Of a stretch of 64,000 nt of DNA, positions 4,501 through 32,625 are shown piece by piece. The first letter of the stretch is position 1. Each line of letters begins with the position of its first letter. Made by a program: the position numbers and the translations under genes. The notes under the pieces are model-generated. The model did no database searches. It saw only the letters and a program-made list of their open reading frames with translations, and was not told the DNA's origin. Where the stretch lies: assembly GCA_964036045.1 (NCBI GenBank), contig OZ038379.1, forward strand, positions 20,708,001-20,772,000. The letters are read 5' to 3'. The stretch is from Eutreptiella sp. 'Long Island Sound 2002' (taxonomy: Eukaryota > Protista > Euglenida).

Positions 4501-7500
4501 GCTCTTTGTTTGGGATCAGCTTCAGAGGCTCTGCGTTCTGGTCCTTCGCAGACGCACGCGGCAGCCGTCCCACGACCAAAAGGGACGCACTGCAGGTGTT
4601 GACGAGCCCTGTGGGGTCCGCCACTCGGGCCTCCAGCGTGTACTCGCCGCCCTCGTCGAACAGCAAATCGAGGCACATTGTACCCGGGGCAGAGGTGTAC
4701 TCCTTGACCCACCGCTCGATCACCTCCACATCGTTTCCAAATCGCTTCCTTTGAGTCGACGTGCACCGCACAGTGAGCGGGACGTCCGCGATGGCCTTGC
4801 CTGCGACGTCGCACACCACGAGCTCCACCTCCACTGACGTATTCGCCCGGGCCCACGGAAGGGTCTTTATCCCCACGTAGTACTTCGAGGGATGCACCGT
4901 GAAACTGGCGCTGGAGGACATGGTCTGGCGGTTGATGTCGGTGACGGTGCCGTTGGCCTTGACTTGAACGGGGTATTTGCGCTTTTGCGACGCGTTTGCC
5001 TTGAAGTCAATGCACAGGCGGTGCTGCCCTTTGGAGTTCGTGTTGCTCTTGTGCCGCAGCACTGGGCCCGAGTCATCGTCTTGAAAGCCCCGGAACCCGA
5101 AACAGCCCCAGACCGGGGCGTCCTGGAAGTGGAAGGCCGGCCAGCCCGCAGGGCTGAAGGTGGTTTTCTGGGAGTCCACGGTCCACTCGACGTTGGCCTG
5201 CGTCAGAGGGCCCCCGGCGAAGTAGCTGGCGTGCACGGCCACGATGGCACTGCCCCCCGTCACCAGCGGCGGGCCTGAGGGCGCTGTACAGGACACGTTG
5301 AACTCAGGGCGCCGGAATTCTTGCACCTGAAATTCATGGTAGTGATGGCCGCCCTCCCCCATTTCGCAGGACACGCCGTACCACCCCAAACCGCACTCCG
5401 TGGGCAACGGAATCTCTGCGTAGAACGTGCCGTACTCGCTCGTGGTGACCACCTGCTTCCAAATCGGCTGACCACTGCCGGGGTCGAAGCACTGAAGCGT
5501 TACCGGTACGCCGCCGGGGCTCCACAGTTCCACCAGCTTGTTGTCAGTGGTGGGGCGGCAGCCGCGGGCGATGCCTTTCAAATGCACGGTCTCGCCCGGG
5601 CGGTACAATTTGCGGTCGTCGAAGGTGTACAATGACATACCCTTGGCATACTTTTTTTCTCGCATTTCGCTGATGAGTGCAAAGCAGCAGTCATCCCCCA
5701 CCTTCACTACAATCAGGCAGTCACGTTGCGAAAGGCCATCGGCGCCGCGAGTGATCATGCCGTTGGCGCCGGTGGTGCCACTCCAGTTCGCGGACCATTG
5801 TTCCCCGTCACCATCACAATCGTACGGGGAGCCCACGACACCGTACGCCACTTCAGCACCGGGGATGGGCTTCCCAGTCTCCAGGGACGTCACCCAGACC
5901 ATATCCTCAGTCCTCGTCCGCAATGCATTTGCCGCCAGAGCCGTGGCCTGGACCCATACGGTGCTTGCCCTCAGGTCAGGCACGTAGCGGCTGGGGTAGT
6001 GCTCTGTGGCCTCTATGACGGGCGGCAAACTCTGTGGGGCAGGCGCGGGCTCCGTCACGTTCGGGTCGACAAACACGATGATGTTCCCCGCCGGGGCACC
6101 ATCCGGGCCGTGGTTCCGGAACGCACTCTTCAGGTCCACATGGACGATGGTGGGCACATCCGGCTCGCAATTCGTCGGAATGGTCCCACTGGCAACGGCC
6201 TGCCCCAAGCGCTTCAGTTCGTCGACGTAACTCTGGAGCGCCTCGTCCATGCCATGCAGGCCCTTCATGTACAAGTTCAGGTACACAGGCCACATCGACG
6301 GCTCAATGGACACAATGCACACGTCCACCCGTGGAACGTTGACGACCACCACCGAGTGGTCGTAGGGTGCGGGGGGGCCCCCTGTGGCATGGCTGATGCC
6401 ATTCGTGTTGGACTTGGGCACAACATCGGGAGGGGTCTTGCTCATGGGGTCCAGAACCCACATGCTCTGCAGGGGGCTGCACTCAGAACCGTTCACGGCC
6501 TTCTGTCCAGCGGCGTTCCCCAGCACACTGAACATCTTCGCAGCAGCCCCAATTTCACACTCCACCGTGTGGGACTGGCCCAGCCTCTGGCCGTAGACGT
6601 CCTTCACTGCGGCATCCACAGTCACCGTGTACTTGGTGCGGGCACGGGTGCGACCGCTGATGTTGACCTCGCACTCGGAAACGCTCAGTTCCATGTCTTC
6701 AATGGGGGGCTGCACGCTGATGAACGACTCCAGGAACTCGTCGACATCCAAAGAATTGTTGAAGGTCAGGCGCAACGGCGTCTGAGGGGGGGACCGCGAT
6801 GCCGCCTGCGGCCCGTGGGCACTAAGCGCCAGCCGATTGTACGTGCAGAACTCGCGGACGCTCGGCTCTGCACTGCACAACGGCCCCTCGGCGGAGGGCA
6901 CGTTTGGGCCGACCGTCAGAGTCCAGTTGGTCCCCTTGGCAAGGGCCTCGCACGGCTTCAGCAGCACGACACGCTCTGGGGGGGTCCGGGAGGTGCAGGC
7001 GCGAATACTCCGGGCCTCAGACACGCCGGCCTTGAGGTAGTAGGGGTCTGAGTCCAGGTGCTGGTGCACTTCCGCGGCGCTCTGGCACTTGAGGGGCACG
7101 GAGCGGTCTGGGCCAGACAACCGCAGCGCGGGGAACACTTTGGCGCCATCCATCGCTTGATCAAACACGAGGGCCATGATGGGCTGCGTGCCAGTGATAC
7201 CGCAGGGCAGAGACCGAATCAGCCTTGGCGTGGCCGTGGACCACTTGTTCTCAAACGTGGCCGCGAGCGGAGTCACCGCAGCGCCCAGCGCTTTTGTGCC
7301 TTGCTTCACGACCGCCGCATATTCCGTCGCTTGTGCGAAGCGGTACTTGGGCTCGAACATCAGCGTGCGGTCCCCGATCCATCGCCAGCGTCCGTCGGTT
7401 TTGGGGCTGAGCTCCACCGGCACCAGGAGCTCATCCACAGCAGCGACACTGGAAATTGGCACCATCGGGTGCGAAAACGTGATGGAGAAATGCGGCGCCA

Positions 7501-7861
7501 AGGAGACCTCCCCTTCCGGTGAGCATCGCACAACTGTCAACTGTCCACCCTCCGCTGTGGGGGCTACAGCAGCAGGTGCTTCATCAGTGGTCTCTGGAGG
7601 GAAAGGCATCTGCTCTTGTGCTGACGGCGGGGGCGCCGTCGTCGTTGGCCGGGGGGCAAAGTCTACTCCCAGGTCATGCGGCTCCCAAGTTGGAAGCCGC
7701 TGCTCCAAGTGCGCCTTTTCATCAGAGGTCAGGGTTGCAAAGCTCTGCACAGAGGTGGCTGTGACATCCACGTATTGGCCCACCATATCGTCGGAGGCAG
7801 GCTCTCGCACCGAAAGGAAGATGGCCGGGTTGGCCTCCTCAGTGGGATCACCATCATACAT
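1562..7861 (-). CDS. Bacterial-type alpha-2-macroglobulin family protein (Ig-like/MG domains, bait region, thioester-domain fold), single exon; thioester motif lost
   Basis: Uninterrupted ORF (1562..7897, likely ATG at 7861 after a pyrimidine tract and AG at 7877-7878). It carries A2M-family motifs TDRxLYRPGE-like 'DDRKLYRPGETVHLKG', 'EFRRPEF', 'VVDEAVLAL', 'VRTNFDALACF', 'VPLPDSLTKYRV', 'PRFLNVGD', 'GRWGNTQEN', and C-terminal 'PPATAEEVLSPEVFGRS'. The usual YPYGCxEQ position reads YPFEYVES. Strong GC3 bias. Confidence 0.92.
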   Translation of the reverse strand: MYDGDPTEEANPAIFLSVREPASDDMVGQYVDVTATSVQSFATLTSDEKAHLEQRLPTWEPHDLGVDFAPRPTTTAPPPSAQEQMPFPPETTDEAPAAVAPTAEGGQLTVVRCSPEGEVSLAPHFSITFSHPMVPISSVAAVDELLVPVELSPKTDGRWRWIGDRTLMFEPKYRFAQATEYAAVVKQGTKALGAAVTPLAATFENKWSTATPRLIRSLPCGITGTQPIMALVFDQAMDGAKVFPALRLSGPDRSVPLKCQSAAEVHQHLDSDPYYLKAGVSEARSIRACTSRTPPERVVLLKPCEALAKGTNWTLTVGPNVPSAEGPLCSAEPSVREFCTYNRLALSAHGPQAASRSPPQTPLRLTFNNSLDVDEFLESFISVQPPIEDMELSVSECEVNISGRTRARTKYTVTVDAAVKDVYGQRLGQSHTVECEIGAAAKMFSVLGNAAGQKAVNGSECSPLQSMWVLDPMSKTPPDVVPKSNTNGISHATGGPPAPYDHSVVVVNVPRVDVCIVSIEPSMWPVYLNLYMKGLHGMDEALQSYVDELKRLGQAVASGTIPTNCEPDVPTIVHVDLKSAFRNHGPDGAPAGNIIVFVDPNVTEPAPAPQSLPPVIEATEHYPSRYVPDLRASTVWVQATALAANALRTRTEDMVWVTSLETGKPIPGAEVAYGVVGSPYDCDGDGEQWSANWSGTTGANGMITRGADGLSQRDCLIVVKVGDDCCFALISEMREKKYAKGMSLYTFDDRKLYRPGETVHLKGIARGCRPTTDNKLVELWSPGGVPVTLQCFDPGSGQPIWKQVVTTSEYGTFYAEIPLPTECGLGWYGVSCEMGEGGHHYHEFQVQEFRRPEFNVSCTAPSGPPLVTGGSAIVAVHASYFAGGPLTQANVEWTVDSQKTTFSPAGWPAFHFQDAPVWGCFGFRGFQDDDSGPVLRHKSNTNSKGQHRLCIDFKANASQKRKYPVQVKANGTVTDINRQTMSSSASFTVHPSKYYVGIKTLPWARANTSVEVELVVCDVAGKAIADVPLTVRCTSTQRKRFGNDVEVIERWVKEYTSAPGTMCLDLLFDEGGEYTLEARVADPTGLVNTCSASLLVVGRLPRASAKDQNAEPLKLIPNKERYEAGDCAVVTVQSLLSDPCQAVAQLQGRGLLYTECFAIPPGGSHDLRFDVKEEWIPGAKKRLNVDVVVDRSASGTGEGLVGAQAGMDLEISYKIKCLTVDVRPGATHLTPGSKTDVSVSVHNAATKAPAAAADVAIWVVDEAVLALARGMCPRNPMPEDEPEAAEYFISPTPQGYFYGDGTRIEGYARHSFRCDTRVSLLSRNWRELLFEAIGDEIYDECGYRAYGMGMARCMGMAANGMGGPGGADMPIAVRTNFDALACFHGNVRTDAAGACTVPVPLPDSLTKYRVIAVACTAQSAFGMGESAVEVALPLMVRPSLPRFLNVGDHAKLTVVVQNQTSRAADVAVVARTSNLELVGPGVGGFRIHLEPQQRLEVRFEAKTVLPGKAKVQVGAEMVGAAAGGVADAADAEVPVWTPATAEAFAAYGELDPDGAVATHALQPPADVYPAYGGLQIGSSSTILQTVTDAFEYLVEYPFEYVESMASRVLAFALLKDIQTAFASPTIPKDPELTTLGSILVQKLLKAQLPCGGFGFWAQDTEADVFVTLHVAHCFAQVQRKGHKVSAHAVGRLIEALRDLSAFPHWDKYSESTRRTLQCLRCYVLSLFEKAEMASEAAELYNAAGGVHKLGLDAAAWLALAVHGTSPLKATHSIVQSVLKYFANQTVETAGAAHCCTGYEDAGADTLVLLRSSPRTDAIVLEALQVMDPSNAIIPKLMKGLLGVRQRGRWGNTQENVFALLAVDRYFNTYEAATPAFTAHSWLSTSLVADHEHKGRSTVTKVTDVPMKYLVDTAGAAPQPLHIHKVGPGRLYYRLGLKYAPKSNILPAHDAGFIVQRTYKALQDPEDVQTTAQGYKLKSGRLIEVTLTLETRMVRHRVALVDKLPACLEPLNPALAGTPELGGTPPAAGRCCYWRWYDHDNLRDERVEAFAGRVWEGAHTYSYVAQVTGLGEFIAPPATAEEVLSPEVFGRSATLTVHAE

Positions 7862-7923
7862 TATGGACAAGAGGTACTTGCAGAGGAAAACAGACACTCA
7901 GAAAGTGAATGCAAGGTGTTGAT

Positions 7924-16488: not shown

Positions 16489-16611
16489 TCATCGAGGCAT
16501 CTCCATATGTTGGCAGACGAGGCGGCCAAACTCAGAGCAGGGGACCTCCTTAACGCTGGTTTTGCTCTGCAACTTCAGATCGAATGTGTAACACCCGTTG
16601 TCAATGGTCCT
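16489..16611 (-). CDS. icd: IDH-like last exon ([12 protein letters not shown]...[19 protein letters not shown])
   Basis: CAG acceptor; matches Icd C-terminus TVTYDF...EVKCSEFG; TGA at 16489-16491. Confidence 0.85.
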   Translation of the reverse strand, partial: RTIDNGCYTFDLKLQSKTSVKEVPCSEFGRLVCQHMEMPR

Positions 16612-19600
16612 CTGCACACGGAGAAGTGCCCTTGTGTGGGAATTTCAGGGAAAGAGAGTCGGCGCCAGGCCCTTCCATAAGGGAGAGGCCAGGGAATGGG
16701 GACCGCACATTGGCACGTATGCCTGGCGCCTACCATACCGTTCCCCCATGCAGTGCGCATCACCACCACATTGCACACCTCCCAACCCTCTCCCTGCCTG
16801 CCCTTTGTGAGTCCTGTCTGCACATGCCTGAACCTCTCTCTTGGTCGGAGCACACCTGCACAGCCTGTGCCACCATTGCAGCCGCCTCACTCCAACCGAT
16901 CTGCTGCAGCATCATGGAACCCGCCAGTATAAGACCACTCGGGTTCACTTTGTCGAGTCCTGCATATCTGAACATTGACAAAAGATACTTCAAAACGTAA
17001 CTTGAAGGCGCCATTCCTCACGCGACAGCATGGGGTGGGCCACTCAGCATACTGCATACCCTCTGAAAACGGCGTCAGCGTCTTAAACCGGAGAAAAGGT
17101 GAAGCATATTTCCGGAAAGCCCTTTGGCATCTCCTGTCAACACTGGACTTGATGACTTCTTGCGCGCGGAGATGTTCGGAGGAAGTCCCTTGGGGGCAGG
17201 TTTTCCGTAAAGCACGTGGAACACCGTCGAAAGATGTTCGCCGGGATGCATTTTCACTGCAATGTTCACAGATGAAGGCCAAACAGCGGTCATTTGGTGT
17301 CTCCCAGCGCTAATGCAATTCTGACCCTTTATGTGCTGAGAACTGCAAAATGCACTCGTTCTCATGGATACTCTTTCTTTGTGTTGGTCACCACTTTGCA
17401 ATGCCCAATGTGTCCCGTTTGAATGCTCGCCTGGGGGTCTCGCGGATGAAGATGGCTTGGCAACGGTGCTCGTAGCTACGGGGGGTTCAGACGTGAGGTT
17501 GCGCCTGCATTTCCAGGATTCAGTACTGGTGAACAGGGCGAACCTACTTTTTTGGAGGCAGGGATTCATGTGAGGGTACATCACAAGGCAGGCATGTGGG
17601 CAGCCTCCGCCCATTGGGAGGTTGTGTGGTGCTTGACATGAACCCCTGCTCGTGAATCCGCCCGTGTTGCAGGCCGCCGGAGCACGTTTAAATCTACCTG
17701 TAGTCTGGGTTAGCACTCAGTATCAACGGGTAAATGCGACGTCTAAGAGGCTGTGGAGGACCCATCCAGTGCGAAGGGGGGCTTAGCCAGGGGCCAATAT
17801 CGCGAGGGGGAATTTTCGCCATTTGGAAACCCACAAATTTGTCCACAGCACACGCTTGAAAAAAGGCAGCGTATGCAAATGGCACAAGGCAAAACCATGG
17901 GCGGAGTTGGATCAGCAGATGCGGATGCGGAGTTACTTCATCTACGGAGACCTATGAACCATTGCACAAGTGCGTTTCAAGATCCAGCAGCATTCCTTTG
18001 GGCATCAGGCTGAAAGGAGCAGCAAACGACGGCACTGCAGGCAAAGGGATTGCCGCTCCTGCAGCACTGCATCAGCCCCACCGGGGACCACTGGGATCCG
18101 CTCTCAGTAGGTTTATACCTAATCGCATCCGCACCATCTTGGGGCCCGGAGGGCCCGGTGGGTGGAGGGCCGTTGGCCCGGTAGAGGAGGGCTGCGGGGA
18201 GAGGAGGGGATTGGCCGTTGGACTGGAGGAAAGGGGGGGGGGGGTTGGCAAGTGGCGTCACTCCACAGCCACTGCGCCACCCAGCGGTGACAGCGGTTGC
18301 CCCGTGGGTGGCAATTGTTGTGTTGTACGTTGCAGTTCTGGTTCAACCGGAAACCACAACTCAGTTCAACAGCTGCATCCAAAAGTGTCCCAGTTCAAAC
18401 CAACTGCCAATATCACTGTTGAGCAACCATGGACCATGGGCCATCGACCATGGGCCATGGGCCAACCCATCAGCAGGCGGACCTAAAGCGAGAAATGGCA
18501 GTCTATGCACACTCATGAACAACAAAGGGCGTGCGCTACAAACACTGGAAAGATATTTCTCGTGGTGCCTCGCCGAAACACTCAATGCAGATCAATGGGT
18601 TCAGGGAGGGGGGGGGGGGGGGGGGAGGGGTTGGCGGATGGCGGATCGCCGTGACCTGAGATCTCTCAAAAACGGAAGCGCATGTGACGGCCTTGACGAA
18701 GGGCAGCACCAGAGGGCCCAACACACATGCTCTTGCAGGACAAATGTCCGCCAGTTTTCTAAGCAGCGAGAGCCTCCCCTGGCAATCCCCTCCCCTGCAG
18801 TGCCACAATGAAGCCTGTTGCAGGCGCAATGAAAATGTGCCGAAAATGCCGTCTGTTACGCCGCTGTGCGGCTCAGCAGCACAGGCCAAAGGATGAGGGC
18901 ACCGGGGCCTTGGCCCTCCATGTGAAGAATCGGAAGGGCTGGGGCTAGAACAATGGCGTTGTGCCGGGACAATGCACACCTTGGAGCGGTGCCATGGATG
19001 GCCTCAAATACGGCATGTCCAGTTTGGAAATTGTAGTTGCCGCACGGAGACATGCCAAGGCCGCCCACTTGTGCCGCCAGGGCGTGGGTGATGTACGCGC
19101 CGTTCAAATTCATAGTAACAATGACATCAAAATCGCTCGGACGCAACATGCTCTGGGACCAAGGGGCCAACAGGAAAGCAGAGGCTGTACGAAGCCAGAA
19201 CAGGTTCACGGTTCAGAGGAGGAATGGGAACAACGACCCAATCCTTCAGGGGCAGGTGCGCTGCACAGCACTGTACTGTCCGCAGCAATACTGTGTTGCA
19301 CTGTACTGGAGTGTACCGCACTGCACTGCACTCACTGTACCGTCCCATCCCCTACCATACAGGATTGAATTGTACTGGACTGCTGCAATGTACGGCACTT
19401 TACCGCACTGCACTGTACTATCCTGTACTGTACTGTACTGTACTGTGCTGTGCTGTACTGTACTGTACTGTACTGTCTTCTGGTGGTGGTGCTGGTACTG
19501 GCCCCTCTGGCACCACTTGCACCTCTTCCGGTGCCGTTGTACTGTGAAATTTGCGTACGTTTCAGTAATCAATATACTGGGAGGTATGGTAGGCCAGTGC

Positions 19601-22600
19601 ATTCTTGGAGACAAGCGGGCTGTTAAAAAAGCAAAGCATGATACATCAAGGTACAATTGCCCCCTGTTCCATGATAATTATCCAAATTGCGCGCCGCAGG
19701 TGCCGAAACCAAATATGCATAAAAAAAGGGTTTACCTGGCAACATTTATCTGCAAAATCTGCCAAAAGCTAACACAGCAAGTTTCTGGTTCAGGGCAGTT
19801 TTCAACTACATTGTTCCAATCGCCGAGTGGATAACATCCCAAATGTTATCCTCCCACATTTCAACCCAATATGCACTGTTTCTGAAGTTGCACATTGTCC
19901 AAAAAGAGCTCAAAGATTATGGAACGCATGAACGTTGTTCAAATCGGTGGACAACTGCATGTGTGGCAACGAAACATACACGGGCTGATTGGCCAAACAT
20001 GTCACTGCACTACGTGACGTGCTCTGATTGGGCTGAGATGGGTGGTTTAGGGTCTACTTGCAAAAGGACCGCAAGCCCAGTCTCTCTTTCGGCCAAGGAC
20101 CAGAGGTGGTGCTAATCCTGAAACCCATGATTGGAACCAAAGAGACAAATACTACATACTGGCGGGCTTTACGCACCAACAAAGCTAAAATGCATGGTGT
20201 AGTCACCCGCATAGCTAAAATGCATGGCAAGCAGCAAAGCCCTTAAGGGGCATCCGCTAAAACTGGAACAACACAAAGAAGATTCCCACGGTCTCTGTAC
20301 AATATGACATACATCAAATGAGCCAGATCTCAGGTGCCGGATCGAATTTCGCCGATTGCCCCACCACATACTCGCAGGCGCACCGTAGGGAAAGGGTTAT
20401 TAGCTTTAGGGTCATTGGCACCGCATTAACTTTTCTGAATTCATGCATGACGATGGTCATCACCCTCCAGCTTCCGCTGGACTTCAACAACAGTTGGGAC
20501 CAAGGAGTTCGGTTGAAAGAATGTACACGTGTCCATCCAACGTGGTCAAGAAAGTGGCACCTTTTTATGCAGTCTAAGACATCAAAGGTGTCCCCGTCTC
20601 TCCTTGCATAAGCAGCCACTCATCTGCCCCTATTTCTAGAGGGACAATTGGTAACACCTACCGATCCCTCAACCTAACCCAAGATGAACAGATCGTCAAA
20701 TCTGTGATCCTTTGTACTCATTTTTCCTTCATATTGATATGAAGGAGAGATGAAGGAGAGCACTTATTGCGCGCCGCAGGTGCCGCAGGGTAAGGGTAAT
20801 TAGCAAGTATGAACTTTGAGTCGTCCCCGCTTTGGGCACTCCTGAGATGGCAAGGGTTAGGGTGGTTGCGAGCGAGGACCTGACCCCAAGGGGGGAGGGG
20901 GGGGCCTCTACGGACCCCATAATGGTTCTACGGGCTAATGGCTTTTGTGGGCTTTGGAGGTAATCTGATGAACTCAGCTAAAGGAAACCTATGGCGGTGT
21001 GTAAGAGTGCTTTGAGCCCCACATCGGGCAAGACGAGGTGCCATACAAATGTCGTTTGTTGCTCATTGAAGATCCCACCCTCGAGCTCAGCCCCGGCTCG
21101 ATGTGGTGGTGCTGCAGTCTCTCCTCTATAGAGAGCGATGGTGTGAATAGATCAGCGTGCGCGGAACTTTTTTGTTCCGGTGTATATTTCGTGGACGGCC
21201 CAGTACATATTGAGGACGGGCAACAATTGCACCATTTGTGGGGGGAAGAGGCCCAGAAAGGTATAAATAGCAACATGAACGGGAGTACGCAATTTGGGTG
21301 GTTGATTTTCTTTGGAGGTGCTTGTCTAGTGGCGTGCCCTGGGGCGCACCCTGCGGTGCAAAATTTGGTTAATTATCCTAGAACAGAGGCAATATAGTGG
21401 TGCATACACACATACTCCTATACATTCTTTCCCCCCTATTTTTGCAATGCGATCATCGGCACAGTGCGGCCAAAAGAACACAAAGCCTCACACCCTGGGA
21501 AGTGAGTTTCAACTCATCTTGGTAGTTGTATATTGGTACTGTTGGAGTGAGAGACAGTTCTCAGGTACCTCCTCAAGAAATGATCCTTGTGCAGCAAAAT
21601 CCTCCCGAACATCTAGTGGTTGCAAATTGGTTTCTCAACCTTTTCACTAGCAAATTGTTGTGTGCTGAATGCCGTGTTTTTGGAGTTGTAGGAGGGCGCA
21701 AACAGCATAATATGGTTTCCATAGATTATAATACCATCATGTTGGAGTCTGCAATAATTGTGGCTTATGAGAACTCTAGCCCCCTGCCCCTCTCAGAGCC
21801 CCGCCCCCCCCCCCTCAAGGGCCTGAAACCCATATCATCGCTTTTGGCACCTCACACAGTGGCGGCGCTTCGCACCTTACAAGTGATTATTTGTGCATGG
21901 GTAAACGTTGTTAGCAGCCCGTTTTTTTTGGCGAAGATGGCCTTCCCAATGTTGGCACTATGCATCTACAACATGCATATAGCGTCCACAGGTAAACGGG
22001 GATGGTACACAGGTAAACAGAGTGGCATTTGGTGTAAAATGTGCCACATGGGGCGCTTAGTGCCCACCCCCCCCCAAAGGGGGGGGGGATCTAATGCGTT
22101 GGGAGGGGGTTAGAGTTCTCATATACCGTATTTATTTATCTCTGTTACACCTACCCTTTATGTTGGGGGGCCATAAACCCATCTTTTTCTCCTCCTATTC
22201 CTTGCTTTTTTGCTCCTTGCCGCCTGATGAAAGTATGTTTGCTCCGGAACTGCGGAGAGAATCTTGGAAAGCATTACTATACCTTCACCCAGAGCTACAT
22301 GTGTACATGTCGTTAGCAACTGTGCCATTCAACGATGGAACTGTCCACAGGTGCTGGCTGGAGCAGAACCCGACCAAGACAAAGGAGAATGGTTGCTCCA
22401 AGAAATCATCACGCAGGCGTCTGCGGTCCTCATTTGCAGAACTCGGCTGTCGTCCCTCAAATGCTCCGAAGGCCAAAAGTGTCCAAGCCGAATCAGGGCT
22501 ACCCAACCCGTAGAGTATGAGGACGTAGCCCCCATTGCCCCATCCCGATACGGAAGCTTCTAGGGTACATTATGGGGCCTGAACAGTCCCCTAGCTTCTT

Positions 22601-25600
22601 CCCCAACGCCCACCCACCTTCACTGGGCCCTTTTCCTTTCTGACCCAGGTTCCCCTCAGACCGTTCAGGCCTCGTCTACCAAGACAAACTGCCGCCGCCC
22701 TTGATCACGCAAGAGCAATCCTTGGGAGACCTGTTGTAGCAAAGTCGGCACCAGCATGTCCTTCACCAACAGTTTTGACTTCCACTTGTCGTCCCCGTGG
22801 GTGTCCCACAAAGAATCAACCACAGACTCTATTTCCTCGACCACCTCCGCCTGCTCGTCCTGAGAATGCAGACGACAAAATGGCTCAGTGGGGTAAAGAG
22901 ATCAGACCAGAACCAGAGAGCAGCCCACCCCAAACACACTGCAAGAGGAGCCCAGGGCGTTGCTTGAGCGGAGGGGGGAGGAGGGGAGGGGGTCCAGGGG
23001 AGGGGCGGAGGGGGGCCAAGGGGGGGGGGGGGTGACCTAATTAAAAAACAGACAAATGCAAACCAGAGGTAATGCACTCCACAGTCCGGGGGGGGGGGAG
23101 GCCCCCCCCTCTGCCGGAATAAACTATATCGACCAGGAATTGCAAAAATGCACCACATTGACCCATTCAGTATATACATTTGACCTAATGTCTGAACACA
23201 GGTAATCAAATCATCTTTTTGGGTCCATACATTGTGCCCTCACCTAACCACCACCAGGCAACACAAACAGGAAACACAGTGGAATGCTCATTGTTATCAA
23301 GTTGTTTGCCGAAGATCAATCAGAGTTGGACTCACCTGAGCTGGACTCACCAATGTCATCCTCCTCTGAACTGGAAGAGGAACCAGGACTTGGCGTGCTA
23401 TTACGGCTGCTTGTGTTATAAACTCACGCAGAGTTGCCATTGGAGTGTTCAGAAACAGTGTGGAACATGCTTTCTGTGCCACATTATACGCTTCTTGCCT
23501 TTTCTTCCCGGTCCATCTATCTTGGAAACGAAAATAGAGGATCGCATGTACAACGTCGTCGCATTTTACGCAGGGACACAGTTGGACCGGGGTGCCGAAG
23601 AACGCACTTATGGGACGCTGGGACATGGTGTCTGCAACAAAGGGAAGAAAGGATACAGTGAAGTGACCAAAGAACCCTGCTATAAGTGCGCCCAAGGCGC
23701 GGGAGGGCAAAATTGGCCCAAACAAAAAAAGTTCCCAAAACCCTGATTCTCAGGTGAATTAGAGTGGAGGGGGGAGGGGGGGAGGGGGTCCAGGGGAGGG
23801 AGGGAGGTGGTCCAAGGGGGAAGCCCCCCCCTGCCGGAATGAAAATTAAAGCAACGCCCTGGGGCGGGGGGAGGATGGTGTGTGGGCCATAAAGGCTGCG
23901 TGAGTCTGCCGGTTGGTACCTCTGGGTGTACGTACTCACCCTAACCCTAACCCTAACAAGGATTGAATATTGGGACCGAGCTGGTGGAGGAAGGAACATC
24001 GTCTAGGAGACTTCAACGCCAAATGAGGTACGCGCTGGAAAGTGCATGAGAGTGTCCAAAAAGGGGGTCAAAATGAGCTGTATTCATCCGTTTGGGCACC
24101 ACAACTGGACTAGGATCATGTTTGGAAAACCATGATTTTGACCCGTTTTTGAGCCATTTGTGGTCCCAAATTGGCCCGATTTCAAGGCCCTTTCGGCTTT
24201 GAGAGGGGCCAAAATTGCTCAAATTGGGCTCAAAAATAGGCTCATTCCACTTGTCTGTGCACCCCAAATAGTCCAAAAGTATCTTTGCAAAAACACATTT
24301 TTGATCCATTTTTACAGATTTTTGGTCCCAAAACAGCCCACTTTCAATACATTTCGTGACTTTGGAGTGCAAACTGGCTTGCTATGGGCTCCAAAAGGGC
24401 TCATTGCACTTTTTTAGGCACCCCAAATGGTCTAGGATCATTTTGGAAAAACACTTTTTTGACCCATTTTTGACCCATTTTTGGTTGCAAAACAACCCAT
24501 TTTCAAGGCATTTTGGGATTTTAGGAGGGCCAAAACGGGCCACAACAAGCTCAAAACGCGCCAAAAAAACTTGTATTGGCATTCCATGTGGTGCATGATC
24601 ATTTTTGGAAAAAAGGTTTTTGCTCCCGGTGGACCTTGTTGACCCATTTTGGCACCCACCTCTTTGGGCAACCTCTTGCAGCTTGCTACTGCCCACTGGG
24701 CCTAGGTACAGGGGTCTAGGCGTCGGTAAGGGCAATTTTGAGGGGTGGAAATCACCAAAAGTGGGTGGTTGCGGGTGGATTAGGTGCGCTCGAAATCGCG
24801 TTTTGAGCCACGTAGCCCAAGATATGGTCTGTTTTTGGTTTGGGGCTGTCGGCGCCAAATGTGCACAAATTCTGGGGCTTTTGGGGGCCTTTTGGTAGAC
24901 GGTGTTCACCAGGCACAGTATTTCCATACCATGTTGGCTGCATGGTGGGAGTGGAACAATCAACAGTCCTTGATATGAATGTGTTGGTGGAGTTGCCCTG
25001 CATGCGCATCAGAACTCCCCAATTCGTATGGGTGGTGTCATCCCAAGGGAAGTCACTTGTCACACCAGCGGAAGAACCCGCAGCGATGTCTTGTACTGTG
25101 GCTGGACACAAAGCTTCGAGGTACACACTGTACAGGTGCACTGCTTGTGGCAAAGTTGAGTGTGGCTTGTTGTTGAGGGGAACGGGGGGTTTCCATTGTT
25201 AATTTCCAATGGAGAGTTCAGAGAAGAAACAAACCTCTCACACTGAATTTACTCACTGGCGAACCCTGGGTGGGTGTGCATTCATGAAATGAGACATAAC
25301 ACCCGAGAGCCTGGAAATGGACACAACCATACTGGACAATCTCCCTGATTAATATCCTGGCCCATGGGAGATTTCGGAGAAGCTGGAGAGGGGGGGGGGG
25401 GGGGTAGGGGCCCTTGAGGCGATTGGGGCCAACCCTTTGCTGGAAAACAACGCAGTGCAGTCGCCCACGTCGTGCTGGAAATGAAATTTGTCAGACAAGG
25501 AAAAAAAGCGCCCTTCGCACTAACAAAATGTTGCGGTTGCTGGGGGAAAACGCGTTCTTTCGGAGGTGCAACTTTCATGCACAGATTCAGAGGACCAATG

Positions 25601-28600
25601 CAAGTAGGGAAGCCATTATAAAGCAAATAGGAAAGTCAATAGCTTCGGATACCATGTCCATTGCACTGGGTTAAGGTCGGGACGCAGGGACAGGGGCCAG
25701 AACTGCCAGAAGCAGGCAAAAGGGCAGACGCAGACTGCTCCATGGCCTGAGAAAGCCTGGCTGAATCTGTCGAAGGCGCCAAAAAACAAGCAGCGGCAAA
25801 GGTTCCGAGCACACAAGCCACCTGAAGTCGCACAAATCGGCACCAGGCTGCATACCTCAGGCTTCAGATCAAAGGTAGGCTCCACCTCCTGCGCAATTTC
25901 CTGAAACGTCTGTCCAACCGCCCGTTTGCCCAGGATTACGCTTTCCCTCTCTGTGACACATTCCTCCCTGAAATTTTCAGTGGCTACCTGGCAGACAGTC
26001 GTGGCACACGTCAACTGAAGCATCTCCGGAGCCCTTCTTCCCTTAGACGGAAATTCAGTGTGGACCAACTACCGATTCCGTAAAAATTAGGGCGTACCAT
26101 TTCACATCGCGGAAATCCCTATGCCAGCCAAGGGACAACGATTGGAAGCCATAGCAAACCCAAGCCAACCAGTGCTTGATACATCAAGTTTGGAAACGGG
26201 AACTCAGGATGCCTGCTGACAGTATTCATCCCAGGGTTTCCCATCGCGCCCACAGAGGCAGATCAATGCAGGACGGAAGGGAAAATGCTTTGGATCAACG
26301 TGTGGGAATTTTTCTGGCATTCCCAGCCTGCGGATGGCAACGTCAAAGCGTACCCATCAAATGGTGGGTTACTGGGTATTGTATGTTTTGACGGTTGGTG
26401 CAAGATTCGCCTCAGATGCCACCGATTGAGTACGTGCTGCACGGATTTCCCAGAGGAACGGGCCTTTGAGTCAGCAGCTCCACATTGGGGGCCACGGCTG
26501 TGGAGGGACCCAACAGAAATTGGCGAAGCGGATAGAAGAAACACTAAGACCCACGAGCTACGGAAGAGGACAAACCTGATACCCCGTTGCTTTAAAGAGA
26601 CCCTCGGTGTGTTGCATAATGTTCGCCGTGTGGGCAAACACCACGTTCCGCTTGTTGTGTGCTAATGCGAACTCGATGGCTGCCTCCCCCAAGCGCTCGG
26701 TCCCCTGAGCGGAGATGTTCTTGATCTGGAAGCTGGTAGTCTGGGGCCCGCTCCGCAGTGTCCCGGTGTCTTTCGATTGGATGAACTTGTGCAATGCAGC
26801 GGCCTGCGACGATGTCCAGAAATGTTGGGGAACCCACATCAGGAGTGTCCAACCGCAGGATCAAATTTCTCATGCGGGGCAAGGCCATGCAGCTATCTGA
26901 ATGGTCCTGTCTGAGCAGCCATTGCAATGAGACATTTTTTCGCCGCTCGGTTGCTGCCTTGAGGTTCCTTGGGCATCCGAGCCCAATCTTCCTTCATGCT
27001 CTTGAGGGTGCTCCTCTGGCAGAACACAACTCGCTTTGCCATATTTTGTGGTTCATCTTTATCATGTCGGGGGAGCAGAGAGATGGTAATGAGCTGCGCC
27101 CACCCCCCTCTCCCCCCTGAGCTCAGGATCATGACTGTCCGTTTTTCGTCGTTGTTGTGGGCGTTTGGCGGGTTTCTTTTCGGAAGCCTCAATTGGCATT
27201 TCCGGAAAGCTGCAACACACACTCTGAACACAGAAATCTGTAGTCTGGGCGTTTCCGGAAAATGGTGATATTCCGAACCTGTTTTTGTAGCGTAATGCTT
27301 TTATGCTAGAAGCCTGCTATTGCGAGGATGTCAAGGACTGGTTGCAAAAAGATCTGAGGCTGGATCATGTTGAGGGCCAAGGATGACTATTACCCTGAGT
27401 CATGCTAAAGTGCAGTCAGGGCGTCTCTCGTTGTGCATCTGTGTAACGTACAAGACTGAGTAGAGCAGATAGCCTGGCAGCACAGTGTTCTGATTGAGCG
27501 ATACAATGCAAAGCACAGCAAACGCCAACAGCAATCCATCAGGCAAGAATTTACACAATTGCAATATAGGACAAGGATACCACAACACATACAAGAAATC
27601 ACTGAAAATTGAGTCGTTTACTGACTGCAAAACTTCTCAATACTTGGATACTGGTCAGCGCATGTGATGCATTTCACTGTACAACCCCCAACGGTTCTGC
27701 ATGAAGAAGTACAGCGGTTAAAGGCAAACAAACCAGAATGACATTTGATCTTGCCCTCCCCAGGATGGAGCTTGCACACTTTCAATTCAGCCGGAGGAGA
27801 AGCAGTTTGTCACCCTATTTACTGAAAGTATTCCACTGAGAAATCAGAAGTCAAGAATTGGGTGAGAGTCCGCACAACACAGCAGCAAACCTGCCTGTGA
27901 TTCCAGGAGGAAACCTGGTGAACACTGCCCTTTGTAGCAAGCATGCCCTGCCTACTCCCCTAATTTCGCCAGGGGAAAATTTTGCCATCTCCTTAAAGAC
28001 GAAAGTATCCCCGCCTGAAATTCTCCTCTGGCCCTGTTCGGTGCAAGAAGCACGGGGGAGAGATAATGACTTGAGCCTGGTTTTCACGTTTCTGGTGCTT
28101 GCCACAAAGGGGTGAAGATGCCAATGGCAATGCATTCTCTGGGTCCTTAGTTTTGGAGCAATTGTTTGGAACAGCAGGTTCTTTCAGATGTGTGAACCAA
28201 TGCTGCTTTCATGGGCAGTTTTGATTTGCAAATCTCTCTGACTCTGAACGGAGCATGCGCTTGCATGTCACGCGCGCGTCTTTGCATTAACGTACTGTGT
28301 GCGGTGTGTTAGGCAGAGAGCAGTCCAATGGGATGGGGAGCCATTCGGTCGATGCCTCCCTCCACTTCTGTGCTCGAACAGCAGACAAAATGCCAAAATC
28401 AATATGAGAGGGAGAAGTTTTTCTGTACACCTGGTGGCTTTGTGACGCAAGTTGGAGCTTTGGGAAGACAAGCGTGGCGAGAATCCCCCCCCCGCAATTT
28501 TCCCTCGCGAAATAATCCCGCAAAAAAATTTCCCCCTCCTGTACAATCCGCTGATACCAGGCTCTCAAGGGAGCAGCAAACGCGAGGGAAGAGGGAAGCA

Positions 28601-31600
28601 TGCCAGCAGGGCTGTGGGCAGTGCCCAGCGTTTCACTGGATTCGATTGTCGGATGCTCGACTCGTCTGTTGCCTCATCCATGAGAGATCCTAAGGGCTGC
28701 AATCGACGTATTTCTCAATTGCTGCAGCTCATGGGAGACCGGCAGGCATACATTTGTGTCGTTTCAAGAGAGCTTTTGGAGCAAATATCCAGTGCACATG
28801 CGAGTTTGAACGTAGGGTTCGACCGTCGTGAGACGGATTCTCAAATCGCCTCACTGCTTTTTGAGGAGATCAAGACAATAGGCACCAAGGGTCTTCCGAT
28901 GCATGATTTGAAAGAAATTGGTTCGAGAATGGATGCGATGGAGATCGGATACAATTCGCTGCACTGCGAAGTGGGTCCATTCATGCAGGTGAGTTTTCTG
29001 GCAAAATTATCGACGAACATGAGGATCTGACGCTAAGCGCTAATCCAGCATGCATTTGCGCGCATTCATGCTCATGTTGGGCAAACGCACTTTCCTACAC
29101 TCCAGGAACTCGAAGCAGTGCAAGTTTCTATTGCTCGTTTTCTCAGCGTCCGAAAGTGGTGCTCGGAGAACACAGTGGAATACAGTCGCTTCCCCATCTA
29201 CAACGCTGGATACGTTGCACATGTCCCCGGCAATCTGGAGGGGTGCAAGTGATACTGACTGAAAGGCCTGGCTGCCACAACCCACCCACCATGTATTCAT
29301 TCATGCCTCGATCTACAACACGCCACTGCCCTGTCTGCATCCATATCGCTGGGCTTGTGGGCGCACTTTGCCATTCCTGCCATTCCTGCCTCTTCGAACT
29401 GCGGCCATCTACCTCCATATGCCACCCCTGCCACACCCTCTTGCACGGGAGTGGGTGAGGTTGGCAGCAGATGAATGCTGCGAGGCGGGCGTTGCAAACA
29501 CGTGTCAATTGTGATAAAACCTTGCGAATTTACTGGTTTTGACCCCCTCCTGTGCTCCAATCAAGGCCTGTATGACAGACACATGGGCGACTTCCTGCCG
29601 GCTGGGGCATCAAAGGGAGACACGCGAACACATTGAAAAGAAGCAAAGCGGACCTGCGGTGATGCAGCTCGAAACTCGATGTCACTGTAGACGTCTTCCG
29701 TTGTCTCCCTATCCATGAACGTATGTGGGCATGACGCCAGCACACACGGTCATCGCACTGGGCTTCACCAACCGCATTTCCACACATTGTCCGCACCATC
29801 CAGGCATACTGCAATATCAACGGGGGCCCAGCGTGAGGGGTGTGGGCATAGCAGAACGCTTTAGAGGAAACAAATGCGCTGCCCCTCTCGTTTGTCCTCC
29901 CGGGCATATCGTCGTTGCATGCCACCCCAAATGCGCCAGAGTCACCCACCACCCCGCACCCCTACACAAAGAGACCGCCCCCGCGACCCGCACCGGATTT
30001 TTGAAATCTTTTTCTGTCAAAGAGTGTATTGAGACGGGGAGTTAAGTCAGGAGTAGGCCGGGTATTCGCAGATGAGGAGTTTTGATTGAAGCAGTCCTGG
30101 TTCGGTGCGTTCTTGTTGTCGAGCAAAATTGATGGTGCGCTGCTTTTAGGCAGGGGGATTTCTGGGTCCATCATCCCCCCGAAACCCATAGAGGAGGCGC
30201 GGCGTCATGTTTGGTAGGCCGCAAGGGCGTGAGCATATGTTGGGCCTTTGCAAGGCGTGAGGGGTGTGCGGAGGTCTTGCAGGGTGTAGGGGGTGTGGGG
30301 GCGTGACAAGGTGGCAACGGAGCACTTGGCACGCTGCGAGGACATAGCACCTGAAGATAGTCACGTTCATCAACTCGGGGCGCTTCATCGGGGAAGGAAC
30401 CCCTTCGATATACCAGATGGGTTGCATACAACAATACAAATCCAAGATCCAACGCAATTCATGCGTGAGGCTTCGTCCTTGCTGATGAAGAAGAGGAATC
30501 TGCATTGGACACTATCACGGTTCTCAGTGGACAGAGGGCGTGCTTGGAGAAGGACAGGCTCCACGGATGGGAGCCCGCCAAGCAAAGCGAACCAGGACTG
30601 CCAAACTCCCTCCCGGAACGGACCCCGGCCAACCTCGCCCTCCCCCCTCTATGCGCTCGGTGAAAATGGAAATGGAAAGCGAAACCTGCCCCGCAGGGGA
30701 GTAGGTGCCACCATTGGGGTAGAAGGCGGTGTACATGAGCAACGGTGCAAAACAGGTCTTCTATGTTGCTCCCCCTTACTCCCCTGGTATGCCAATAAGC
30801 TTTGTGCATGGTGGAGTATACCTCTGTCTATACACCGTAAAATAACTTCGCTGCGCCCTTCAGCCAAATTACCAAAGCAAACACCCTGCAAGATGCCAGT
30901 TCCGTATTCATGGCAGAGCTACACCACCACATCCGATGCATTGCACCAGTGCAAACGCTTCAGTGCGCCACTGCTACATTCGCTGCCATGTGCCACTGCC
31001 ACATCGACTACATTGCCCCAAAAAAACCAACACCACCACCGCCAGGACGGAGAAATGGGATGGTTTTGTGTCAACCAAAGTGTGCCCATGTGTGCAACAA
31101 CGAAGCAACACGAATGGTGGGCACCCAAACAAAACATCTGGTTTATAGTTTGTATTTTTCTGCTCCTTCTGCTGCTTCTGTGTCCCCTCCATTGCAGTTT
31201 TCCGTGCTGTTTCAATCGGCCACACTCATAATGACACCATTACAAGTCCTGGCCGCAACATTGCACCCTAAATCGCCCCTGGTGCCACCCCTGGTAATGG
31301 CTTGCGGCCACTGGGATCCAAAATGGCTCCATTGGTTTGTATGGGTCTCATACCCGCGGCCGTCTTTCGATGGACCTCGCAATGTGTGCAATTTGGATTG
31401 GATTTCGGCGGGAAACTCCAAAAAAAAAAGGCTAAAAAAAAACATCCACAATCGTTGAAAAATCCAACATGCAAAGGAGGGTTCAACAGAAGTATTCATC
31501 AACGGTCCATGCATTGTGAAAAAAAGTGACTTTCCGTTTCATGGAACGAGGAGCCCCGAAAAAAAAAAAAGCAACGGAGCGGCACGCAGAAAAGAGCGTC

Positions 31601-32351
31601 CGGAGTTGTGCCAAGTGAAGCTATGCCTTTGTCGCTTGCGAGATTGCGGCACAAGTCGAAAGGTGAAACGTCCGCCAGCACCCCAATGCTCGCCACCAAC
31701 TCTCCATCTGGCAAACTTGTAGCATGTGGCAACACGTATCACAACCATTGCCATGTGCGAGACCTTTGGAGCTTGCAATGGTCCCTTCATTCCGACCATG
31801 TACTTCTTGAATGCGTCGATGGTTTCTTGGGGCAACCATTCTCCTTTATTTTGGTAGGATTTTGCACCAGCCGGTACCTAAGGACAATCCCATCGTCGAA
31901 CACCGCGGTTGCTCAGTGCAGGTGTGCACATAGCTCTTCCTAAAATCAATCTTTCCACGAAGGCACGCGAAGGCATCATCATAACATGAAAGCTCCCAAG
32001 GGTGCAATCTGGCAGCAAACATACTTCCATCCATTGAATCTTCCGAGTCCCATCATATGCGTTGAACACGGCGGCATCTAGAACTTGTTGTGTTGCACCC
32101 CACAACTCAACACCGGTTCCATCCCCCACGATAAATGGAATGATGGGTGTGTGCGGAACCTAAGGCATACAAGTGCAACTAGGCCCTGCAACACACCCAA
32201 GATGGAGTGCGAGCACTTTGAGCACGCGCAATACCTCAAGAGCACCGTGCTCGTTTTGGGTAATTTGACCTTGGGATGCAAAACAGTGTTGGAGACAACG
32301 GCTTTGTGAAATCGATAGTCGGAGAAGGTGTCGGCGAGCCAACATGGACAT
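16489..32351 (-). CDS. icd: Isocitrate dehydrogenase homolog (bacterial Icd type, mitochondrial presequence), multi-exon, predicted catalytically dead
   Basis: Phase-consistent GT-AG exons: 32235-32351, 32025-32159, 31764-31877, 30351-30481, ~26576-26910 (internal frame break), 25856-25987, ~23428-23503/23520, 21569-21612, 18980-19152, 16856-16967, 16489-16611. They give [53 protein letters not shown] and KVNP. Confidence 0.9.
16856..16967 (-). CDS. icd: IDH-like exon ([29 protein letters not shown]...)
   Basis: Canonical sites; phase matches the upstream exon. Confidence 0.92.
17090..17330 (+). mobile_element. Possible hAT-like transposase C-terminal remnant
   Basis: Broken frame '[32 protein letters not shown]' loosely recalls the hAT 'ER.FS...MF.D.Q....ALM' tail. 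Confidence 0.25.
18980..19152 (-). CDS. icd: IDH-like exon ([31 protein letters not shown]...[10 protein letters not shown])
   Basis: Canonical sites; core IDH/IPMDH signature region. Confidence 0.92.
19262..19478. repeat. Degenerate pentanucleotide (TACTG/CACTG)n simple repeat
   Basis: actgtactgtactgtgctgtgctgtactgtactg runs. Confidence 0.85.
21569..21612 (-). CDS. icd: Probable IDH-like micro-exon ([14 protein letters not shown])
   Basis: 44 nt between TAG and GTACC. It joins to SMLRP to give SFLEESMLRP, compared with Icd AFLQQILLRP. Confidence 0.6.
22226..22415 (+). pseudogene. Inverted, diverged duplicate of IDH exon 2 end, intron 2 and exon 3, inside a downstream IDH intron
   Basis: gatgaaa|gtatgtttgct...cgatggaactgtccacag|gtgctggctggagcag...aaaggagaatggttgctccaagaaatcatc aligns to the reverse complement of ~31810-32030. 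Confidence 0.8.
23428..23520 (-). CDS. icd: Probable IDH-like exon ([25 protein letters not shown])
   Basis: Strong GTGAG donor in phase 1 that fits the next exon. Acceptor is uncertain (23503 keeps phase; 23520 is stronger but phase 1). Confidence 0.45.
23938..24900 (+). mobile_element. Non-coding repeat element starting at (CCCTAA)3; inverted relative at 50790-52110
   Basis: ccctaaccctaaccctaacaaggattgaatattgggaccgagctggtgg... matches the reverse complement of 52105 down to 50815, including internal ~170-bp units. Confidence 0.75.
25856..25987 (-). CDS. icd: IDH-like exon ([21 protein letters not shown]...FDLKPE)
   Basis: Canonical sites, phase 0/0. 'VTERES.ILG' resembles an insertion I recall from one bacterial Icd subfamily. 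Confidence 0.8.
26576..26910 (-). CDS. icd: IDH-like exon(s) 5 (…AAALHKFI…[13 protein letters not shown]…[20 protein letters not shown]); 5' part has a frame discontinuity
   Basis: The 3' part matches Icd GTKRLVRAAIEYA...[20 protein letters not shown]. The 5' boundary is uncertain. Confidence 0.7.
30351..30481 (-). CDS. icd: IDH-like exon 4 ([21 protein letters not shown]...NVTIFR)
   Basis: Matches Icd RSLNVALRQELDLY...IFR. An alternative in-frame acceptor gives a start at 30499. Confidence 0.85.
31764..31877 (-). CDS. icd: IDH-like exon 3 (VPAGAK...[27 protein letters not shown])
   Basis: Canonical splice sites; Icd motif. Confidence 0.9.
32025..32159 (-). CDS. icd: IDH-like exon 2 ([16 protein letters not shown]...KIQWME)
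   Basis: Canonical splice sites; strong Icd N-terminal motif. Confidence 0.9.
32235..32351 (-). CDS. icd: IDH-like exon 1 (mitochondrial targeting peptide [24 protein letters not shown]...)
   Basis: TTTTTAG|C ATG start; Arg/Ser/Leu-rich presequence with no acidic residues; GTATT donor; phase 0. Confidence 0.8.
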
Positions 32352-32489
32352 GCTAAAAAGGAAGCATGGGTGAAGGATCGCCAAGATCACCTCCCAAAAC
32401 ACAAATGGCAAGGTACAATTACACATTGATGAACCTATGCATGTGTAGATGCGTAGTTGTGCATGTGGATGTTTGGCGCCCTTGAAGGC

Positions 32490-32625
32490 CCTTGAAGGCA
32501 TTTTCATTGTTCTCATGTGGGCTGCTTCGCCGTGCTACTAGAAAGGTGACAGGTATTCTTGGGTGCGTATCCCAGCCTCTGCGCACGCAGTGCCCACGCA
32601 GTGCGCACGCAAAGCAAGAACTTGG
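32490..32625 (-). repeat. Dispersed repeat, partner at 63225-63380 (+)
   Basis: Shared gctttgcgtgcgcact...gggatac(g/t)cacccaagaatacctgtcacct...cccacatgagaacaa. Confidence 0.8.

Follow-up and report, generated by a model that had tools for sequence, protein, structure and literature searches.

Gene structure and transcription

Here we describe a gene for an isocitrate dehydrogenase-like (IDH-like) protein in the nuclear genome of the euglenid Eutreptiella sp. 'Long Island Sound 2002'. The window analyzed is a stretch of 64,000 nucleotides (contig OZ038379.1, positions 20,708,001 to 20,772,000), and all coordinates below are positions in it. Based on a tblastn search with the isocitrate dehydrogenase (Icd) of Escherichia coli K-12, the matching blocks of which span 32159 to 16504 on the minus strand, and on hand-curated splice sites, the gene occupies 32351-16489 of that strand and consists of 11 exons (Table 1). 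All ten introns, with lengths from 75 to 3578 nt, are of the GT-AG type, and the coding sequence, which starts with the ATG at 32351 and ends with the TGA at 16491-16489, is an open frame of 1449 nt. The gene product has 482 aa and a mass of 53.7 kDa. The limits of the gene are exactly those of the original prediction, and its description of the splice sites and reading frame as intact is borne out by the ten GT-AG introns and the 1449-nt frame. Each of exons 3, 6, 9 and 10 matches PF00180 (Iso_dh), and exon 7, which was missed by a model built on homology only, was brought to light by an RNA contig. The exon 1/2 junction, at an intron of 75 nt, is placed only by homology across the junction (G.LE/VP in the relative P0006, described below, and in bacteria). 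For exon 4 a second possible in-frame acceptor lies 18 nt upstream, at 30499; length homology with P0006 favors 30481.

The RNA was taken from one estuary metatranscriptome run (X1), the contigs of which were aligned to 26500-32400. These contigs are 100% identical to the exons and leave out two segments bounded by GT..AG on the strand of the gene, namely 31878-32024 (147 nt) and 26804-29653 (2850 nt). One contig of 391 nt contains, in addition, 12 nt that correspond to the terminus of exon 4, and 92 nt placed at 25956-25985 and beyond; because of these additional nucleotides, exon 7 could be placed, and junctions 4/5 and 6/7 are confirmed. A cDNA had been named as a check in the original prediction: a transcript was found, in which four of the ten junctions (2/3, 4/5, 5/6 and 6/7) are seen, but the other six are placed by homology, as are exon 1, the acceptor of the exon 3/4 junction and exons 8-11. 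In short, the gene is transcribed and spliced. A comparison of exon 6 with metagenome contigs gave only bacterial Icd sequences (34-40% identity), and no cDNA of the host organism.

The whole stretch is present in DNA runs labeled 'organism A'. DNA run X6, labeled 'organism B', is near-identical for parts of the locus within 30007-31996, with no differences in exons 3 and 4 and few in the introns, and 'organism B' is probably a close strain.

Table 1. Exons of the IDH-like gene and the candidate acceptor at its 5' end
Feature	Position	Strand	Evidence or remark
Candidate acceptor: polypyrimidine tract and AG (CTTCCTTTTTAG)	32353..32364	-	One base 5' of ATG; no RNA coverage
Exon 1: ATG, Arg/Ser-rich N-terminal extension of about 17 aa, start of Icd domain	32235..32351	-	Homology
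Exon 2	32025..32159	-	tblastn; exon 2/3 junction confirmed by RNA contig (X1 record 4)
Exon 3	31764..31877	-	RNA at 2/3 junction; Pfam Iso_dh E = 1.8e-5
Exon 4: substrate loop; S113, R119 and R153 kept; N115T, R129Q	30351..30481	-	tblastn, alignment
Exon 5: carries retained Y160	29654..29708	-	Junctions 4/5 and 5/6 in RNA contig (X1 record 1)
Exon 6: clasp region, K230T (AHTAN)	26576..26803	-	RNA contig (X1 record 1), 100% identity
Exon 7: first half of long-form insert	25856..25987	-	End of RNA contig (X1 record 1) and splice sites
Exon 8: second half of insert, D283P	22731..22859	-	Junctions by homology only
Exon 9: D307A and D311H (NGAYITHA), HGTAP	18980..19152	-	tblastn; Pfam Iso_dh E = 3e-14
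Exon 10: RYAG..VNP, clade-specific conserved helix (E. coli 357-381)	16856..16967	-	Homology
Exon 11 with TGA stop at 16491-16489	16489..16611	-	Homology

Loss of catalytic residues

Catalytic and cofactor residues are numbered here as in E. coli Icd, to which the IDH-like protein is 45% identical; the closest solved structure by sequence is that of the Bacillus subtilis enzyme (1HQS). Ten catalytic or substrate positions are constant in E. coli Icd and, where covered, in all 97 relatives of the bacterial long-form subfamily considered below, whereas the IDH-like protein replaces six of the ten. Pairwise and family alignments both give these replacements as N115T, R129Q, K230T, D283P, D307A and D311H, which are seen, for example, in the motifs AHTAN instead of VHKGN (K230T) and NGAYITHA instead of NGDYISDA (D307A and D311H). 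The other four, S113, R119, R153 and Y160, are retained. Five of the replacements (all except D283P) had been read correctly in the original prediction, and D283, which it considered probably lost, is indeed gone. Y160, which it also considered probably lost, is present in the sequence EDVYSDIEF.

The ligands of Mg2+ (D283', D307 and D311, the prime denoting the other chain) are P/A/H in the IDH-like protein and S/V/S in P0006, whereas they are D/D/D in E. coli Icd and all 97 relatives where covered. Of the catalytic pair Y160/K230', Y160 is present and K230 is T. Type-I Icd is an obligate dimer with shared active sites, each of which takes K230' and D283' from the other chain. The IDH-like protein has lost its part of the active site in cis as well as in trans, so that no working IDH site could be built either in a homodimer or in a heterodimer that includes an intact subunit; as judged from these residues, it is catalytically dead as an oxidative decarboxylase.

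In the nucleotide pocket, H339, Y345, N352, R292 and K100 are retained, and K344 is replaced by R. The motif HGTAPRY...NP was thus rightly listed earlier as retained; outside it, F stands in place of Y391, and R395 has given way to Q or L, according to which alignment is used.

Relatives and probable bacterial origin

With exon 6 as the query, an exhaustive HMMER search of 1.84 billion cluster representatives yielded 206 hits with E-values up to 0.001, of which the best 150 were inspected. Among these 150, the sole 100% match was the window's own open reading frame fragment; the motif VHKGN occurs in 137, and K230T was recognized only in the window's fragment. P0006 is the only full-length relative of the dead type among the 150, and it is 48% identical to the IDH-like protein. 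It consists of 477 aa encoded on a JGI contig of 1436 nt (Ga0506600_019471, sample 3300050368), with the frame open across the contig, the stop at its end and the N-terminus cut off. P0006 shares N115T, has D283S, D307V and D311S, and has lost the motif HGTAP..Y..N (H339, Y345 and N352), whereas K230 and R129 are kept. Residues Y160, S113, R119 and R153 are kept in both proteins. The GC content at third codon positions (GC3) is 97% in P0006 and 61% in the IDH-like gene, and P0006 therefore comes from a quite different organism. P0093, a 164-aa Icd fragment among the same 150 hits, reads VHNGD instead of VHKGN, and may be another Icd without the catalytic lysine, from an unrelated lineage.

A word-index search with residues 225-345 of P0006 gave 98 proteins of 266-499 aa, mostly 460-490 aa, all of which have intact catalytic residues. 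The named sources among them are Phycisphaerales/Phycisphaeraceae, Bryobacteraceae and Candidatus Acidoferrales, and most are without an organism name. The IDH-like protein is up to 50% identical to such intact long-form proteins. An insert of about 45 aa was considered as a lineage-specific feature, but this was rejected because the insert is common to the whole bacterial long-form Icd subfamily (460-490 aa). In a comparison of P0006 with 185,579 prokaryotic species, each represented by one genome, the dead form was not found in any bacterium; the best matches, with 43-45% identity, were intact Icd of Acidobacteriota, Thermoanaerobaculia, Phycisphaerae and Verrucomicrobiota.

In a maximum-likelihood tree, the IDH-like protein and P0006 are sisters (SH-aLRT support 100) and are nested among the bacterial long-form Icd, with a stem of length 1.24 and tips of 0.98 and 1.62. 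Long-branch attraction was considered as the cause of this grouping and rejected, because the two proteins share derived states (found in less than 5% of the 87 others) in 46 columns, whereas control pairs share at most five. Among the 46 are eleven columns with little or no variation in the others, as well as a one-residue deletion common to the two proteins. On this evidence from the alignment, the clade of the two proteins is real, and its inactivation is old because it is common to sisters that are only 48% identical.

Type-I Icd is essentially a prokaryotic enzyme. Since, in addition, each of the retrieved relatives with a named source is bacterial, horizontal transfer is the likeliest history, and the IDH-like gene is likely to be of bacterial origin and to have gained its introns afterwards.

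Fold and evidence for maintenance

For the scans against folds and family models, P0006 and single exons stand in for the spliced IDH-like protein. The AlphaFold model of P0006 is a complete Icd fold (predicted local distance difference test score 87, predicted template modeling score 0.88), in which the degenerate nucleotide loop has low confidence. Its top structural matches are type-I Icd, with a Z-score of 46.3 over 409 residues for 1HQS. The best family models are those of prokaryotic NADP-dependent IDH. P0006 nevertheless falls below every NCBIfam equivalog cut-off, with 368 bits on NF005610 (cut-off 585) and 139 bits on TIGR00175 (cut-off 432), whereas an intact relative, P0197, scores above (636-695 bits on three models). 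On our own profile of intact members, the IDH-like protein reaches 549 bits, as against 788-890 bits for the members themselves.

Of the 132 columns that are invariant in 88 intact enzymes, the IDH-like protein keeps 98 (74%) and P0006 keeps 90 (68%), whereas the IDH-like protein matches the consensus in only 36% of the variable columns. The invariant columns that have changed gather around the active site (105-116, 129, 155, 162, 230-235, 281-283, 305-315, 338-346 and 389-395). In simulations of neutral drift to 75% or 50% amino-acid identity, none of 300 sequences remained free of stops, the mean number of stops being 6 and 12, respectively. Residues 418-442 (E. coli 357-381) are nearly identical in the two clade members and unlike the bacterial consensus, and could form a clade-specific surface; it is in the clasp region that the two differ most from each other. 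By these comparisons, the scaffold bears the signature of purifying selection, and we regard the IDH-like gene as a maintained pseudoenzyme, and not as a decaying pseudogene.

N-terminus and putative targeting

The N-terminus of the IDH-like protein, which starts with MLARR, is about 17 residues longer than that of bacterial Icd. The first 33 aa contain four Arg and no acidic residue, and a hydrophobic signal peptide is absent. This composition fits a short euglenozoan mitochondrial presequence, and not the plastid signal of euglenids. Upstream of the ATG, the polypyrimidine-AG site at 32364-32353 is the sole such site in 400 nt, and it could be a spliced-leader or cis-splice acceptor. The spliced-leader sequence of Euglena gracilis was not found in the window, a result that is uninformative either way.

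Comparison with known systems

With the long-form type-I NADP-Icd (NF005610/TIGR00183; 1HQS and 3ICD), the IDH-like protein has in common the typical clasp region and insert of some 45 aa. It differs from the bacterial long form in that its gene is a eukaryotic nuclear gene with ten introns, in the extension at its N-terminus and in the six replaced residues.

Inactive relatives of IDH are already known, namely the regulatory subunits of NAD-IDH and ATPTB3. The non-catalytic subunits of NAD-IDH (human IDH3 beta and gamma, yeast Idh1) likewise belong to the IDH family and are kept without catalysis of their own. They are, however, of a different subfamily, as is seen from the low score of P0006 on TIGR00175 and from the position of the IDH-like protein within the bacterial long-form Icd. 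In NAD-IDH, allosteric ligands are bound by the regulatory subunits, which also continue to provide the Lys/Asp pair in trans. In the IDH-like protein, both residues of this pair are replaced (K230T and D283P), so that, as the original prediction had argued, its losses go beyond those of a regulatory subunit of NAD-IDH; the clade is, moreover, a different one.

ATPTB3, which has the isocitrate/homoisocitrate dehydrogenase fold, is a soluble structural subunit of the euglenozoan mitochondrial ATP synthase and has a mass of 35 kDa in E. gracilis (PMC6930080). In Trypanosoma brucei, knock-down of ATPTB3 destabilizes the ATP synthase complex (bioRxiv 10.1101/2021.10.10.463820). ATPTB3 can thus show the kind of role that is open to an IDH-fold scaffold, but its likeness to the IDH-like protein is one of functional analogy only. 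Orthology with ATPTB3, considered because ATPTB3 is itself an IDH homologue (PMC6930080), was rejected on the difference in size (35 kDa as against 53.7 kDa) and because no ATPTB3 chain was present among the PDB sequence matches listed. These were all 36 matches of exon 6 (E-values up to 1) and the best 60 each of exon 9 and P0006, among which chains of isopropylmalate dehydrogenase (IPMDH) and homoisocitrate dehydrogenase (HICDH) were present. Similarly, the 50 best structural matches of the P0006 model included no entry of an ATP synthase. In the literature, we came across no account of a eukaryote that retains an inactivated Icd of type I, the bacterial type, and nothing usable on IDH pseudoenzymes in protists.

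Possible role of the IDH-like protein

The reading that we favor, with somewhat better than even confidence and by analogy with ATPTB3, is that a bacterial-type Icd obtained by transfer now serves as a non-catalytic mitochondrial scaffold or adaptor. We rank it above a silencing or regulatory partner, a ligand sensor, a relic and an enzyme of changed chemistry, in that order. After horizontal transfer from bacteria, ten spliceosomal introns would have been inserted into the gene and a short presequence rich in Arg added, and the product would be imported into mitochondria. In the weakest step of this scheme, the protein, probably as a dimer, would act as a non-catalytic scaffold or adaptor in a mitochondrial assembly, as ATPTB3 does in the euglenozoan ATP synthase, and it would make use of surfaces that are conserved specifically within the clade, for example the helix of residues 418-442. 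If it is a structural or regulatory component, the IDH-like protein would be a clear-cut example of an enzyme that arrived by horizontal transfer, lost its chemistry and was then put to a new use, and it would be one more among the unusually numerous lineage-specific parts of euglenozoan mitochondria that derive from enzymes. A more specific version, in which euglenids have twice recruited the IDH fold as a non-catalytic mitochondrial subunit, the second time from long-form Icd and with the helix at 418-442 docking in a respiratory, ATP-synthase or ribosomal assembly, is a tentative suggestion that we consider doubtful.

Several points weigh against a mitochondrial scaffold or adaptor. The RNA, all of it from one environmental run, has a low depth of 2-3x and does not reach exon 1 and the 5' end. 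Upstream of exon 1 the frame continues open (32352-32516, minus strand) and includes a hydrophobic stretch before it reaches another ATG, at 32516; translation of this stretch would change the prediction of mitochondrial targeting. The polypyrimidine-AG site suggests, however, that 32352-32516 is removed from the mRNA. Only two clade members are known. Synonymous sites are saturated between the two (48% identity; GC3 61% versus 97%), and the ratio of non-synonymous to synonymous substitution rates (dN/dS) is not estimable. The AlphaFold model is that of P0006 and not of the IDH-like protein, and was made from an alignment of intact enzymes.

It is a good deal less likely that the protein is a regulatory or 'poison' partner, a dead subunit that heterodimerizes with an intact Icd and silences both shared sites or tunes its partner allosterically. 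The dimers of type-I Icd do share their active sites, and with K230'/D283' and D307/D311 all lost, neither set could be supplied by the dead chain; eukaryotic NAD-IDH, moreover, gives a precedent for enzymes of catalytic and non-catalytic subunits. However, the window contains no intact long-form Icd that could be the partner, and every intact relative retrieved with a named source is bacterial. The ordinary IDHs of eukaryotes belong to other subfamilies with a different dimer architecture, and the clasp region, as noted above, is what the two clade members have conserved least.

A ligand sensor, in which the damaged pocket would still take up NADP(H), a carboxylate (isocitrate or citrate, for example) or both, and the signal would be relayed, appears less likely again. 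The IDH-like protein itself could suit such a function, as H339, R344, Y345, N352, R292, K100, S113, R119, R153 and Y160 are all present. In P0006, however, H339, Y345 and N352 are gone, which means that the clade as a whole has not preserved nucleotide binding; the contacts to the 2'-phosphate (Y391 and R395) are altered in the IDH-like protein as well, and active-site positions are retained less often than other invariant columns. The original prediction had proposed a selected non-catalytic role, with nucleotide sensing as one form of it. The role itself is in keeping with a gene that is intact, spliced, predicted to be dead and marked by purifying selection, but nucleotide sensing is unlikely as a conserved role because the only known sister has lost the residues for it.

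That the gene is a functionless relic, expressed but heading for loss and not yet hit by a stop or frameshift, seems improbable. The loss of six catalytic residues, the long terminal branches (0.98 and 1.62), the low RNA depth and the very small number of relatives in public data would all suit a relic. Against this stand the intact 1449-nt frame with its ten canonical introns, the absence of open sequences among the 300 neutral simulations even at 75% identity, the preferential retention of family-invariant columns, and an inactivation that is common to the 48%-identical P0006, itself open over its whole 1436-nt contig. An enzyme of changed chemistry, independent of the Asp triad and Lys230, is the least probable of all. 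Both clade members do have Y160, S113, R119 and R153, and the IDH-like protein has most of the nucleotide pocket. The replacements differ between the two, however (P/S, A/V and H/S), in a way that points to relaxed constraint and not to a new catalytic set, and among the characterized beta-decarboxylating dehydrogenases none is known to dispense with the metal triad.

Introns and neighborhood

The introns of the IDH-like gene harbor several other elements. Intron 5 contains a high-copy dispersed repeat at about 27963-28271, where the summed contig depth in DNA run X2 is 1245, as against 26-37 alongside, and many of the X2 contigs there continue into unlike sequence. In intron 7, a tandem repeat (24090-24535) consists of 2.8 copies of a 159-nt unit with 70% matches. 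Intron 8 contains a (TGTAC)n microsatellite of about 18 copies (19371-19476), which is the source of repetitive 'TVLYCTVL' pseudo-open reading frames, and a gene for U3 small nucleolar RNA (21414-21603, minus strand), which lies on the same strand as the IDH-like gene and matches RF00012 over its full length with 43.9 bits (gathering score 34). The intron-rich IDH-like gene is adjoined by an uninterrupted open reading frame of 2111 aa (1562-7897, minus strand).

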